Below, one piece after another: positions 8,191-12,297 of a stretch of DNA of 64,000 bases (the first letter of the stretch is position 1; each line of letters opens with the position of its first letter). The position numbers were made by a program, and so were the translations under genes. The stretch is from Octopus sinensis (lineage: Eukaryota), in contig NC_043005.1 of NCBI RefSeq assembly GCF_006345805.1, forward strand, positions 18,104,001 through 18,168,000, read 5' to 3'. The notes beneath the pieces are model-generated. The model had not been told where the DNA came from. It did no database searches and saw only the letters and a list, made by a program, of their open reading frames with translations.

Positions 8191-8635
8191 TGTATATATA
8201 TATATACCAATGTAATAAAAGAAGAGGTGGTGTTTGTGTAAGTATGAGCACAGAAATATAGTACACTTGCATACAAACACACACACACACACGCACACAA
8301 ACACACACACACACAAACACACACACTCTTACATAATGCAAATATACATACACACATACATATATTATGTATATAGGTATGAAGGTATGGCATATATGTA
8401 AATGTATGGATATGTATATATATATATATATATATATATATATATATATACTACATATATATAATATATATATATATATATAATATATATATATATGGAC
8501 CATACCGTCATTCACACCATATACACACCGCACGCAAACACACACACACGAACGATATATTTTTAAAAAGTTCTTTCAATTACGTTCACCGAGTTTTATT
8601 CAGCCTGGCGGCTATCCGCAATATCAGCGAATGTA

Positions 8636-8850
8636 TTATTCAGTCTTTCCTGTACATTGGAGGAGACCGATTTCCTCTAAGTAAGCGACTGGCAAGTATA
8701 CGTGGTTGACAAGGTTTAAGGAAGTCGAAATGCGTTTGAAGTGTTCGCTGTTGAGTGTTAATATAATGTTCGCCTCGCTCCTGTTCAGCGTTTGAACCAC
8801 AGCATGTCTTTGAAAAGAGTTTCTTTCAGACAAAAACCATAGCATCATGC
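8636..8850 (-). CDS. Probable terminal coding exon 2 of the same gene (joined CDS 540 nt, 179 aa)
   Basis: Acceptor TTTACATACTTTTGGCAG| at 8851; phase-1 join gives ...TVA-G-MMLWFLSERN...CTGKTE*; AATAAA at 8600-8595 downstream of the stop. Peptide not recognised. Confidence 0.5.
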
Positions 8851-9565
8851 CTGCCAAAAGTATGTAAACATTAAATATATATAAATGGGTTTTGTATGCG
8901 TGTTTGTTTGTGTTTGCTGAAAAGGTACTCCAGCATGCTAAAGAGGAGCTGTCCTAAAGAAGCTAAACAGAAAGTGAAATAGCACACAGACGTGCGCGCA
9001 CACATGCAAACATACGCGAACATGCACTCGCACTCACACATTTGGATGGATAAAATGGAACTTTTTGAAAAATATATTTAATTTATGCCTGGGTTCGTGT
9101 CCTTCGGCAGCCTTGGACGTTCTCTATCCAAAGGCTTTTTAAATGAAATATTTATAGTTTTACCGTCTGATTCGAGATCCCCTGTCCCATAAAAGAATTA
9201 TTTCACGTTCTCTCGAAATTTAAGAATAAAGATTTTCAAACGAATAGAGAAAAATCGAAAGATCATTTCGATCCACTGGCAGAACACCTTTCAGGATTGT
9301 GCTTCTCGACCCTGGGCGAGCTTGGACATTTTCAATCCACTAGGTTTTTAGCCTAATATATACACGCTATTATTTATCATCTGTTTCTAGGAACACTGTT
9401 TCGAATGAATTGTTCTATGGTATATAATATATATGTATATATATATATATATATATATATATATATATATATATATATATATATATATATATATATATAT
9501 ATATATATATATATATATATATATATATATATATATATATATATATATATATATATATATATAGA

Positions 9566-9819
9566 TAATATAGGATACATACCGATACGATAATAACGGA
9601 ATTTTTTAGAATTTCTGTCGGCTTACTTCGAGACACACGTATTTGTAGTGATAAAATGATATGGTTATTGACAATTTCTTTATTTTCGGCACATTTGGCA
9701 TTAGAATTTTTTTCTTTTGCCCTTGTTTATAATTTGTTTATAAATTTAACCTTTAAAGGTATTTTTTAATATGCTGACCATTGATAAAAAATTTTCCGAA
9801 AAATGTTATCCTATATTAG
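9566..9819. mobile_element. Probable MITE in (TA)n
   Basis: TAATATAGGATA / TATCCTATATTAG termini; internal ~80 bp similar to 7250-7322. Confidence 0.5.
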
Positions 9820-10075
9820 ATATATATATATATATATATATATATATATATATAAACCTATGCGTGTGTGTGTCTCCTGTTCTGAGGATAGGAGGATACA
9901 CGTGTTGTGGAGAGTCGTTCAAGAGGTCATAGGATTGGTGACGAAAGATTTAGACAATGGATACTAAAATAAGAACAATAATAAATCTGAAGTGAAGAAC
10001 GAATATATTGTGTGTGTATTTATTTGCTCCCAAAGACAGGACTGTCCGGCAATATAACAAATATATATATATATA

Positions 10076-10410
10076 TAGGCGCAGGAGTGGCTGTGTGGTA
10101 AGTAGCTTGCTAACCAATCAAATGGTTTCGAATTTCAGTGGTACTGTGTAGCACCTTGGGCAAGTGTCTTCTACTATAGCCTCGGGCCGACCAAAGACTT
10201 GTCAGTGGATTTGGTAGGCGGAAACCACACCATCGCTTGACAACCAATGCTGGTGTGTTTACGTCCCAGTAGCATAGCGGTTTGGCAAAAGAGACCGATA
10301 GAATAAGTACTGGACTTACAAACAATAAGTCTTGGGGTCGATTCGTTCGACTAAAGGCGGTGCTCCAGCAAGGCCGCAATCAAATGACTGAAACAAATAA
10401 AAGAATAAAA
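10076..10410 (+). mobile_element. Same SINE, internally deleted
   Basis: Head and right half joined without the microsatellite. Confidence 0.85.
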
Positions 10411-11115
10411 GAATGTATCTGTCTATGTATGTATGTATGTATGTATGTATGTACGTATCTATCTATCTATCTGGTATATATATACATATATATCTATAAT
10501 ATAGATATATATATATAATTATATATATATGATATATATACATATATATATATAGATGTATATATACATATATATATATATGTGTGTGTGTGTGTGTGTG
10601 TGTTGGTGTGTGTGTGTGTGTGCGTATGTGTGCGTACACACACACATACGCACACACCATATTACAACGTAACTATATTCTATCCACCAATCCTCATGCT
10701 TTTGAATATTGTTCTGAAACAAATCAGGGAAAGAGAAGATCAAGCAGCAAGCTACCGATGAAAGGGTTACGGTAACACGGCTTAAATGACATTACTACTA
10801 GTATTATTAAATGGAAAAGAAAAACTGTGCCAATATTGGCCGAAATCTATTTAGTTTTGTATAACGCACATGAGTATGCACGTGTGTATTTACGTATATT
10901 GCAGTTAGATGATCATAGTAATCGAGAATCGGAAAGAGTCCATGTAACACAGAATAACAAGACTTAGCATTATTGATGGCTACATGTTACGACTCGTGTC
11001 TCTACTGAGAACACGAGCATTTTACTTCTTATTTCTAGTAATCTAGGTTTTTCCAATACTCTAGACACATTCTGTGATAATTGTATATATATATATATAT
11101 ATATATATTATATGT

Positions 11116-11330
11116 AGTGGCCGTGTGCTTACCAGCCACATGGTTCTGGGTTCGGTCTCACTGCGTGGTACCTTGGGCAAGTGTCTTCTAGTATAGCCTC
11201 GGGCCGTCCACAGCCTTGTCAGTGGATTTGGTTGACGGAAACTGAAACAAGCCCGTCGTATATATACATATACATATTTGTATATGTATGTGTGTCTGTG
11301 TTTATCCCCCCCCGCCTACACACACATATA
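11116..11330 (+). mobile_element. Same SINE, left half
   Basis: Shared core. Confidence 0.8.
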
Positions 11331-11378
11331 TATATATACACATGTGTGTGTGTGTGTCTGTATAAATATATATATATA

Positions 11379-11768
11379 CCAGCAGTATCACCCGGCGTTG
11401 CTCGGGTTTGTTACGACCCTTTAGAATTGGAATTTTTAAAAAAGTAAAAATTTTGCATTATGTAGCTTGTTACTCTCTTTAAGTGAACAATGTTCTGGTT
11501 GAAATACACCGAAAAATGACGACACAGCAGTAAAAAAATCGTAAAAAATAGGGATTTTCATAAAAAAAAGCACCTTTTTGATGTAAATAATTTTTGGTGT
11601 TAACGTGGTCCGATTTGAATTTTTTCTTCTTCAGAAGGAAGAGCAATCCTTCTTCTAACATACTTTAAATTTATTTTGGTCAACTTGTGCAGCAGGGTCT
11701 CGGAGGAGGTAGTGTTAATTGAAAGCTACCAAACCAACCATACACAAACTTCAGCTTTATATATATAC
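11379..11768 (-). mobile_element. Non-autonomous Helitron-like element in the ParB-like gene intron
   Basis: Minus strand ends CCCGAGCAACGCCGGG hairpin + GTGATACTG-like spacer + CTGG|T (CTRR); 5' end TATATATATAAAGC-like. Confidence 0.7.
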
Positions 11769-11972
11769 ATACCACATACATACATATATATATATATATA
11801 TATATATATATATATATATATATATATATATATATATATATATATATATATATATATACATATATATATGCAACTGTTGCGCGCGTTCATGGATCAGGAA
11901 GTCTGTATATATGTGTGTGTGTGTGTGTGCACCTGTTTGAAGAGAAACGGATGACTGGCATACGTAACTTAC

Positions 11973-12297
11973 CTGCAACTGTATTGGTGTTGTTAGCTTT
12001 AAAATTTGGTACAATCATCATCATCCGAATGCCCGCCGGTATAGCATTCAAAGGTATACAGTCCACTTTAACCCTTTTGCACCTTCCTTCTTTTTCAAGG
12101 CGCCGAAACACCAAGAGTCGTGTATTGTTCAATGTAAAATAGTGACCGTCTTTCTGTGCCACTTGCAAACGGGCTCTGTCTAGATTCTGTACAAAATGTC
12201 TACTAGCTTCGATGATGTCTCTTTCATGTGTAATTTCTTCCACAGTCTGCTGACCAGTACAACTGGTAAAATGGATGCTAGATGGTGAGAGGAACAT
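11973..12297 (-). CDS. Coding exon 1 of an uncharacterised protein with ParB/sulfiredoxin-like motifs (108 codons + 1 nt)
   Basis: Non-repetitive open frame [11 protein letters not shown]...[35 protein letters not shown]...NTVA, in-frame TAG upstream of the ATG, ending at a consensus donor GCAG|GTAAGT (intron starts 11972, phase 1). Family assignment is from recalled motif similarity. Confidence 0.72.

Follow-up and report, generated by a model that had tools for sequence, protein, structure and literature searches.

The fold shared by ParB and sulfiredoxin (Srx) has recently come to prominence as a switch module that works with cytidine, adenosine or guanosine triphosphate (CTP, ATP or GTP). 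ParB contacts CTP via its GxRR and ENxxR motifs, and sulfiredoxin handles ATP and catalysis via K61 and the Cys, His and Arg residues of GCHR. This report concerns LOC115215520, an Octopus sinensis gene whose first coding exon lies in a stretch of 64,000 nt (64 kb) [NCBI RefSeq assembly GCF_006345805.1, contig NC_043005.1, positions 18,104,001 to 18,168,000], referred to here as the window. All positions given are window positions, and the gene under study is on the minus strand.

In a 2025 survey in PNAS, eukaryotes were searched with the Pfam model PF02195 at the gathering threshold, sulfiredoxin was reported as the common eukaryotic representative, and short single-domain ParB-fold proteins were noted as possible independent functional units (PMC12704722). 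The best overall explanation of the octopus locus, and one that we regard as probable, is that exon 1 of LOC115215520 encodes a ParB/Srx-fold head belonging to a non-catalytic adaptor, that the acidic tail of this adaptor is encoded outside the window, and that an open reading frame (ORF) previously taken for the second exon is there by chance. The latter frame comes from an original prediction, made from the letters of the window, which described a two-exon gene for a stand-alone animal ParB/sulfiredoxin-like protein. Annotation already listed the gene as an uncharacterised locus; new here are the assignment of a fold and the finding that the gene belongs to a conserved animal family.

First coding exon of LOC115215520

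The segment 12297..11973 is the genuine first coding exon of LOC115215520. It is composed of 108 non-repetitive open codons plus 1 nt, the last exon base being 11973 at the donor GCAG/GTAAGT (the slash marks the splice junction), exactly where the original prediction had placed it, and an in-frame stop is located 15 codons upstream of the ATG. In a search of 5.8 billion proteins, the translation was 100% identical to residues 1-108 of the 179 amino acid (aa) LOC115215520 protein of O. sinensis (P0001). O. sinensis is the 100% match to the window, and O. vulgaris and O. bimaculoides deviate at positions 101-102. Similarity at the DNA level to contigs of another cephalopod runs from ~12302 to ~11992. 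The unspliced exon-1 ORF had no record by exact look-up. The coding exon and the parts of the head referred to below are as follows.

11973..12297, minus strand: coding exon 1 of LOC115215520 (ATG at 12297..12295, 108 codons plus 1 nt, phase-1 end)
11998..12297, minus strand: predicted ParB/Srx-fold head domain, approximately aa 1-100 (AlphaFold2 model, Foldseek, and a family hidden Markov model (HMM) envelope of 1-99)
12118..12129, minus strand: codons for N57-N58-T59-R60 at the strand/helix junction, the positional equivalent of ParB G-E-R-R and Srx (G)C-H-R in the hhalign registers

Non-repetitive ORFs of at least 130 aa are very few in the window, and exon 1 is among them. It is essentially the sole clean host coding exon within the 64 kb.

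Predicted fold of the head domain

The ParB/sulfiredoxin fold is confidently predicted for the head, with a core topology of strand, two helices, beta-hairpin, helix and strand. The AlphaFold2 (AF2) model, built from a 57-sequence domain alignment, has a mean predicted local distance difference test (pLDDT) score of 85.6 and a predicted template modelling (pTM) score of 0.73. Its elements are a strand at 2-9, helices at 19-22 and 25-37, a hairpin at 44-49/52-55, a helix at 58-69, a strand at 76-81 and a short helix at 88-92. When the full-length protein was modelled, the head refolded identically (pLDDT 83-97).

Comparison of the model with the PDB using Foldseek gave 46 first matches that are all of the ParB/Srx fold. 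They include Arabidopsis and human sulfiredoxin, KorB, ParB from M. xanthus, C. crescentus and B. subtilis, Noc, SbnI, Atu1540 and PadC. Foldseek probabilities are mostly 0.9-1.0 (0.66-0.75 for a few late Srx and Spo0J chains), with template modelling scores (TMq) of 0.39-0.60 and E values of 2e-3 to 0.2. In the viral library BFVD, where many matches are nameless, phage and giant-virus ParB/Srx proteins predominate among the named ones, with E values down to 7e-4. The original prediction had proposed a ParB/Srx-like fold together with an AF2 and Foldseek check, and the structural match on which it depended was found.

Residues at the strand/helix junction

The sequences of B. subtilis Spo0J, three further ParB N-domains and human Srx, each verified against the PDB, were aligned with the family (described below) using hhalign, and the results served for register alone, not as evidence of homology. 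The alignments pair octopus N57-N58-T59-R60-L61 with ParB A-G-E-R-R and with Srx F-G-(G-C)-H-R-Y, leaving the Srx Cys unmatched. Residue frequencies at the junction, computed over 100 distinct family domains, are shown here.

Position 57: Asn 96%
Position 58: Asn 74%, Asp 15%
Position 59: Ser, Thr or Ala
Position 60: Gln 26, Ser 14, Tyr 13, Arg 12, Lys 9, His 9
Position 61: Leu 100%

The junction motif of the family is therefore L-N-N-[STA]-x-L. The domain consensus is LxPSxIxF ... [KR]LQV.EKDG.[WY]F.LNN[STA]xL...[RK].LE..G.C..V.V[DE]..P...VP....M, and the near-invariant residues P5, S6, Q45, G51, F54, L56, N57, L61, L67, E68, G71 and P87 are all encoded in exon 1. Basic residues are conserved in 80-89% of domains at positions 43 (K/R), 49 (K) and 65 (R/K), and Cys73 is present in 75%, with I, L or G in the other 25%.

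Box II of ParB, G-x-R-R, was not seen at the equivalent positions N58-[STA]59-x60-L61 in any of the 100 domains, the register being of low confidence. Likewise, no Cys is conserved at the family junction in the place of the Srx motif F-G-G-C-H-R (human Cys99, His100 and Arg101). Box III, E-N-x-x-R, is not conserved in the family; the folded part ends after the helix at 88-92 and carries no helix-turn-helix (HTH). The helix at 25-37, which is equivalent to the K61/S64/T68 region of Srx, is variable. Subject to the alignment register, the head would thus lack all of the canonical residues of ParB (for CTP) and of Srx (for ATP and catalysis). Retained in their place are the polar uncharged residues S6, Q45, N57 and N58, plus K/R43, K49 and R/K65.

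The original prediction had read the octopus junction as an N-R-R motif altered to N-T-R. That reading does not hold. Because Arg occupies position 60 in only 12/100 domains and Leu position 61 in 100/100, Arg60 of the octopus protein is a lineage peculiarity and not a relic of N-R-R, and the same junction statistics make the missing GxRR/GCHR signature a property of the whole family, not an octopus-specific change.

Continuation of the gene beyond the window

Exon 1 is spliced over a very long phase-1 intron to one or more acidic-tail exons beyond the window.

11971..11972, minus strand: 5' splice donor GT (GCAG/GTAAGT); phase-1 intron at a position shared with a related cephalopod and abalone
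1..11972, minus strand: start of intron 1, which exits the window at the low-coordinate end; the window does not include the true coding exon(s) further downstream

LOC115215520 is annotated with coding sequence over a range of 184,651 nt, and the window accommodates only 11,972 nt of the intron. After residue 108, the annotated protein P0001 reads DNSRSTGRGYQRLCQKDADTDRKSE...SEFEWSGENDSEFITSDEEASEEKESLL (DNSRSTGRGYQ...EEKESLL), whereas the originally predicted version reads GMMLWFLSERN...; that both products are 179 aa is a coincidence. No trace of the acidic tail was detected in the window by tblastn, which did recover exon 1 and the originally predicted second frame. The tail is near-invariant in the gene models of O. 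vulgaris, O. bimaculoides and Argonauta hians. In a Logan contig from another cephalopod (L001, 942 nt), head and acidic tail form one uninterrupted ORF, and genomic contigs from a related cephalopod with a near-identical head (L004 and L005) break at ACAG/GTAAGT at the same codon position. L001 is a spliced transcript, since its ORF is uninterrupted where L004 and L005 break. In the abalone orthologue (P0006), a phase-1 intron is found at this position too, directly after the domain, with the donor GAAG/GTGAGT (Haliotis). Its first intron is 43 kb long, and its tail is also acidic, derived from two small exons and ending in EEDSLL. In a 29-protein full-length alignment, tail motifs are kept across phyla. 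The two-exon model of the original prediction is hence replaced by one in which the real continuation is this conserved tail outside the window.

Members of the family

When residues 1-108 were searched exhaustively against 1.84 billion representative proteins with HMMER, a family of 151 clusters emerged at E values up to 1e-3, 60 of which have E values up to 1e-10. A profile search of a 5.8-billion word-indexed database added few members. One apparent member, a bacterial DUF11 surface protein (P0140), was spurious and was lost on re-scoring with the family HMM. Mollusc members are from Octopus, Argonauta, Haliotis, Patella, land snails, a scallop and a chiton. Other spiralian members are from the annelid Owenia, the nemerteans Tubulanus and Lineus, the brachiopod Lingula, the flatworm Macrostomum and a bdelloid rotifer. 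Chelicerates are represented by a scorpion, hard and soft ticks, an oribatid mite and a sea spider, and tunicates by Styela. Among the ~30 clusters that could be named there was no vertebrate or insect member.

Every named member is either 'uncharacterized', in agreement with the resemblance to uncharacterised invertebrate proteins remarked on in the original prediction, or carries a name borrowed from look-alikes with acidic tails. Proteins from Lineus (P0034 and P0180) and Ylistrum (P0012) are labelled 'nucleolar transcription factor 1-like' or 'myelin transcription factor 1-like' and have no Pfam domain match; these labels are suspected to be misleading and to stem from compositional similarity of the acidic tails. 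Literature searches, on locus names as well as on animal proteins resembling ParB, did not turn up any description of the family.

A metagenome-derived member on a 2.46-Mb contig is flanked by genes for DEPDC5/IML1, Ras, a Cys-rich FGFR-type protein, an amine oxidase and SGTA. The possibility that the gene is transposon-borne is rejected on account of the intron position conserved across molluscs and of such ordinary animal neighbour genes. The original prediction had asked whether all homologues might lie within transposons, and they were found instead in an ordinary host-gene context with conserved introns.

The H. rufescens paralogues LOC124141148 and LOC124141149 (Haliotis L002 and L003; clusters P0006 and P0016) have consecutive locus numbers, a hint of two neighbouring abalone paralogues and of a putative tandem duplication in gastropods. 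In some members a single polypeptide carries the head twice or three times in tandem (P0107 from Styela clava, P0138 and P0026), and in P0129 (1072 aa, Logan) the head is at the C-terminus of a long protein without a Pfam match.

Protein architecture and possible role

Exon 1 codes for the entire globular part of the 179 aa protein, a head of ~100 residues, and the tail is predicted to be intrinsically disordered and is rich in Ser, Asp and Glu. In the full-length AF2 model, the entire tail is disordered (pLDDT 48-61) and no signal was obtained for docking of the C-terminal LL or the W motif onto the head. The full-length alignment gives the order of elements as the head; a basic S-R-x-T-G-R-G-Y-Q-[KR]-L segment that opens the true exon 2; an acidic Ser-rich stretch; two C2H2 fingers in one subfamily; [DE/H]-W-[ST]-[DE]; more acidic sequence; and a C-terminal E-x-E-[S/R]-L-L. 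GYQ, the acidic tail, the W motif and the C-terminal LL are all present in the annotated P0001, coded outside the window. Nameable members of the C2H2-finger subfamily are from ticks, a mite and a sea spider. The C-terminal ExE[S/R]LL was found in ~29/91 long-tail representatives, the remainder being mostly ORFs from genomic contigs that read through into an intron. The description of the protein as stand-alone in the original prediction is correct in that mollusc members have no second globular domain, but the head is always tethered to a motif-bearing acidic tail, and the chelicerate type adds two C2H2 fingers.

Because the head appears to be without the nucleotide-binding and catalytic residues of ParB and Srx, its most likely function is to bind protein or nucleic acid as a non-catalytic module, and not to act as an NTPase switch or a reductase. 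The whole protein would then be a small adaptor, in which the folded head binds one partner, and the acidic tail, with CK2-type Ser/acidic stretches that could be phosphorylated, together with its linear motifs may recruit further partners. A nuclear or nucleic acid-associated role, the least certain part of this proposal, is suggested by the basic patch, the UBF/nucleolin-type acidic tail and the C2H2 fingers in chelicerate-type paralogues.

Alternative explanations

The frame that the original prediction joined to exon 1 is located within the intron.

8636..8850, minus strand: originally predicted exon 2, a single-copy 71-codon open frame with AG before it and AATAAA after it; unsupported as coding

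Its signals are physically present. The acceptor TTTTGGCAG/GC at 8851/8850 is exactly 3122 nt downstream of the donor and phase-compatible, the ORF ends with TAA at 8638..8636, AATAAA is at 8600..8595, and splicing would yield a product of 179 aa. Yet these signals are no more than chance provides. In the 11,972 nt downstream of the donor, 32 AG sites fall in 18 distinct phase-compatible ORFs that are open for at least 70 codons, and on the minus strand the window has 246 ORFs that extend from stop to stop over at least 74 codons, plus 53 copies of AATAAA. Octopus genomes have introns of 40-185 kb and AT-rich sequence with many chance ORFs, in which a nearby phase-matched acceptor and ORF do not amount to evidence of an exon. 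The exon-2 peptide has no homologue among 5.8 billion proteins, Logan RNA-seq assemblies included, its ORF had no record as a called ORF by exact look-up, and its D+E content is 8% versus ~30% in true tails. The frame is thus not supported as coding and is best explained as a chance ORF inside the intron, nothing having pointed to some other functional element. It could still be argued that exon 1 is sometimes joined to 8850 in an alternative isoform, with a non-acidic C-terminus and use of the AATAAA at 8600..8595. The compatible phase of the acceptor and the polyA signal no more than 35 nt behind the ORF would suit such an isoform, as would the stretch 8636-8857 itself, which is single-copy in the window and non-repetitive with a GC content of 41% versus 36% for the window. 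However, besides the 18 similar ORFs in the same 12 kb and the lack of a homologue or a recorded ORF, the polypyrimidine tract at the acceptor is weak (60% pyrimidines), the peptide is devoid of every conserved tail motif (GYQ, acidic, W motif and C-terminal ExE[S/R]LL), NCBI gives one product for the locus, and every octopod model has the acidic tail. We consider this isoform highly improbable.

Splicing to an acidic tail beyond the window leaves the nature of the head to be weighed, and several points count against the account preferred here. The relationship to ParB and Srx is drawn solely from predicted structure, with modest Foldseek E values (2e-3 or worse in the PDB). The octopus protein has no Pfam match at E values up to 10, and none of 98 family members matches PF02195 at E values up to 0.01. 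Pfam scans of the originally predicted spliced protein, P0001 and the 98 members placed no model over the head, and returned only the C2H2 fingers in some relatives and spurious single matches. Searches of PDB sequences with phmmer and with the 57-sequence profile gave nothing significant, neither ParB nor Srx, and the hhalign probability of the family is 7% against the four ParB N-domains and 1.7% against human Srx. Residues were equated by way of hhalign registers of low confidence and not by three-dimensional superposition, and loss of the canonical residues is no proof of lost nucleotide binding, as the basic residues at 43, 49 and 65 could form a different phosphate site. The adaptor and nuclear roles are read from architecture, and the true exon 2 is placed beyond the window by annotation and relatives, not by direct reading of the chromosome. 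Taken to its end, the silence of every sequence-based method, together with TM-scores of just 0.39-0.60 and E values of at least 7e-4, would make the head an unrelated small alpha/beta domain of convergent topology, or the AF2 model misleading. This is quite improbable, given that a single fold accounts for all of the first 46 PDB matches and dominates the named matches of an independent viral library, with the secondary-structure elements in the same order. Even the low-scoring hhalign alignments pair helix 2, the beta-hairpin and the junction, and the N-terminal P-S-x-I-x-F strand is similar to the V-P-L-S-V-L-I strand of Srx. If the ParB/Srx fold is accepted, the head might still be an active nucleotide-dependent enzyme or switch (a kinase, NTPase or reductase) with a non-canonical site formed by K/R43, K49, R/K65, Q45, N57, N58 and C73. 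ParB-fold proteins bind CTP, ATP or GTP via varied residues (PMC12704722). Three basic and several polar positions of the head are 80-99% conserved, and Cys73 is kept in three quarters of the domains. Against this, neither Arg nor Lys is conserved at the strand/helix junction of the head, where Leu61 is invariant, and that junction is, to our knowledge, the place where phosphate is held in all characterised members. The counterpart of the Srx K61/S64/T68 helix is variable, the Box III helix is absent, and the remaining quarter of the domains have I, L or G instead of C73. An active enzyme is on these grounds unlikely, and a ParB/Srx-fold head that acts as a non-catalytic binding module is preferred.

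Other features of the window

At least 9 copies of a SINE-like (short interspersed nuclear element-like) repeat of ~135 nt are spread over both strands of the window, with 81-89% identity by blastn. Two of the copies are inside the originally proposed intron.

11100..11234, strand not assigned: SINE-like repeat in the intron; a second intron copy is at 10108..10225 (blastn)
21402-21534, 1936-2070, 7352-7486, 1256-1388, 26384-26518, 50850-50960 and 48551-48608: other SINE-like copies

ARAGORN detected no tRNA in the window, and a tRNA origin of this repeat is thus not supported. A non-repetitive ORF of 183 aa at 44418-44969 on the plus strand (MMKNGADPKCRFCNDMIETVDHLISGC...PDIVVKD...LIDMSIPCDHN...) has a weak match to zf-RVT, a zinc-binding region found in reverse transcriptases (E value 0.004, below Pfam's cut-off), and appears to be what remains of the C-terminal part of a retroelement ORF. 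A further open frame at ~7580-7815 on the minus strand, in the same intron as the frame discussed above, reads ...TRGHAYKVRKQHSSHDFRKHFFTLRVAEAWNKLPASVVDC and has no Pfam match; it presumably resembles the C-terminal tail of reverse transcriptases of invertebrate non-LTR (lacking long terminal repeats) retrotransposons. Most of the long ORFs in the window, e.g. 27847-29167, 33378-33956, 36325-38760 and 47135-48869, are microsatellite or low-complexity artefacts, arising from (TA)n, (CA)n, (TCT)n and (ACA)n-type repeats that give poly-Thr, poly-Leu or poly-Ser frames.

Comparison with known ParB/Srx-fold systems

Sulfiredoxin (Srx/SRXN1) resembles the octopus head in being a stand-alone globular unit of ~100 residues with a similar N-terminal P-x-S-x-[IL] strand, and Arabidopsis Srx (6ky4) is the best structural match in the PDB (E value 2e-3), human Srx chains being matched too. 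However, the octopus family has N-N-[STA]-x at the junction in place of F-G-G-C-H-R, with no Cys, His or Arg there, and the ATP-contacting helix of Srx is not conserved. Srx also lacks the long acidic tail, with its linear motifs, of the octopus family, whose range is restricted to spiralians, chelicerates and a tunicate.

The N-terminal CTPase domain of ParB, Spo0J, Noc and KorB (PF02195, ParBc) shares the core fold and the order of elements, with TMq values of 0.50-0.60 and a root mean square deviation of 2.4-3.6 Å over ~85 residues for the best-superposing chains. Both have a beta-hairpin/helix/strand core with a motif at the hairpin/helix junction. The octopus family differs in having no PF02195 match and no GxRR (Box II), QPR (Box I) or ENxxR (Box III), as well as no HTH DNA-binding domain or dimerisation domain, and its coding sequence lies in an animal gene with an intron, not in a partition operon or mobile element.

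Short ParB-fold proteins of phages, archaea and giant viruses, at ~100-170 aa, are likewise almost the fold alone, and gave the best Foldseek E values (7e-4 to 1e-3). Unlike the octopus family, they are recognised by PF02195, most of them retain the arginine motif, they are encoded by mobile elements, and they have neither an acidic tail nor a C-terminal LL motif.

Because a PF02195 search misses all members of the octopus family tested, the family would have escaped the 2025 survey. We tentatively suggest, as a proposal that falls a little short of an even chance, that it is an unrecognised animal ParB/Srx-fold family, absent from Pfam, which has dispensed with the nucleotide site and uses the fold as a pure interaction head on an acidic tail. 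Its origin might be a short ParB-like gene that early bilaterians acquired long ago from a phage or bacterium, or else a duplicated Srx gene; vertebrates and insects would have lost it later. If the proposal is correct, a conserved animal family without the nucleotide signature would show that the fold can be used as a nucleotide-independent interaction domain, and the head would provide a first structural handle on 'uncharacterized LOC' genes that are conserved from octopus to ticks and ascidians. The family would then stand beside sulfiredoxin as a second distinct eukaryotic lineage of the ParB/Srx fold.

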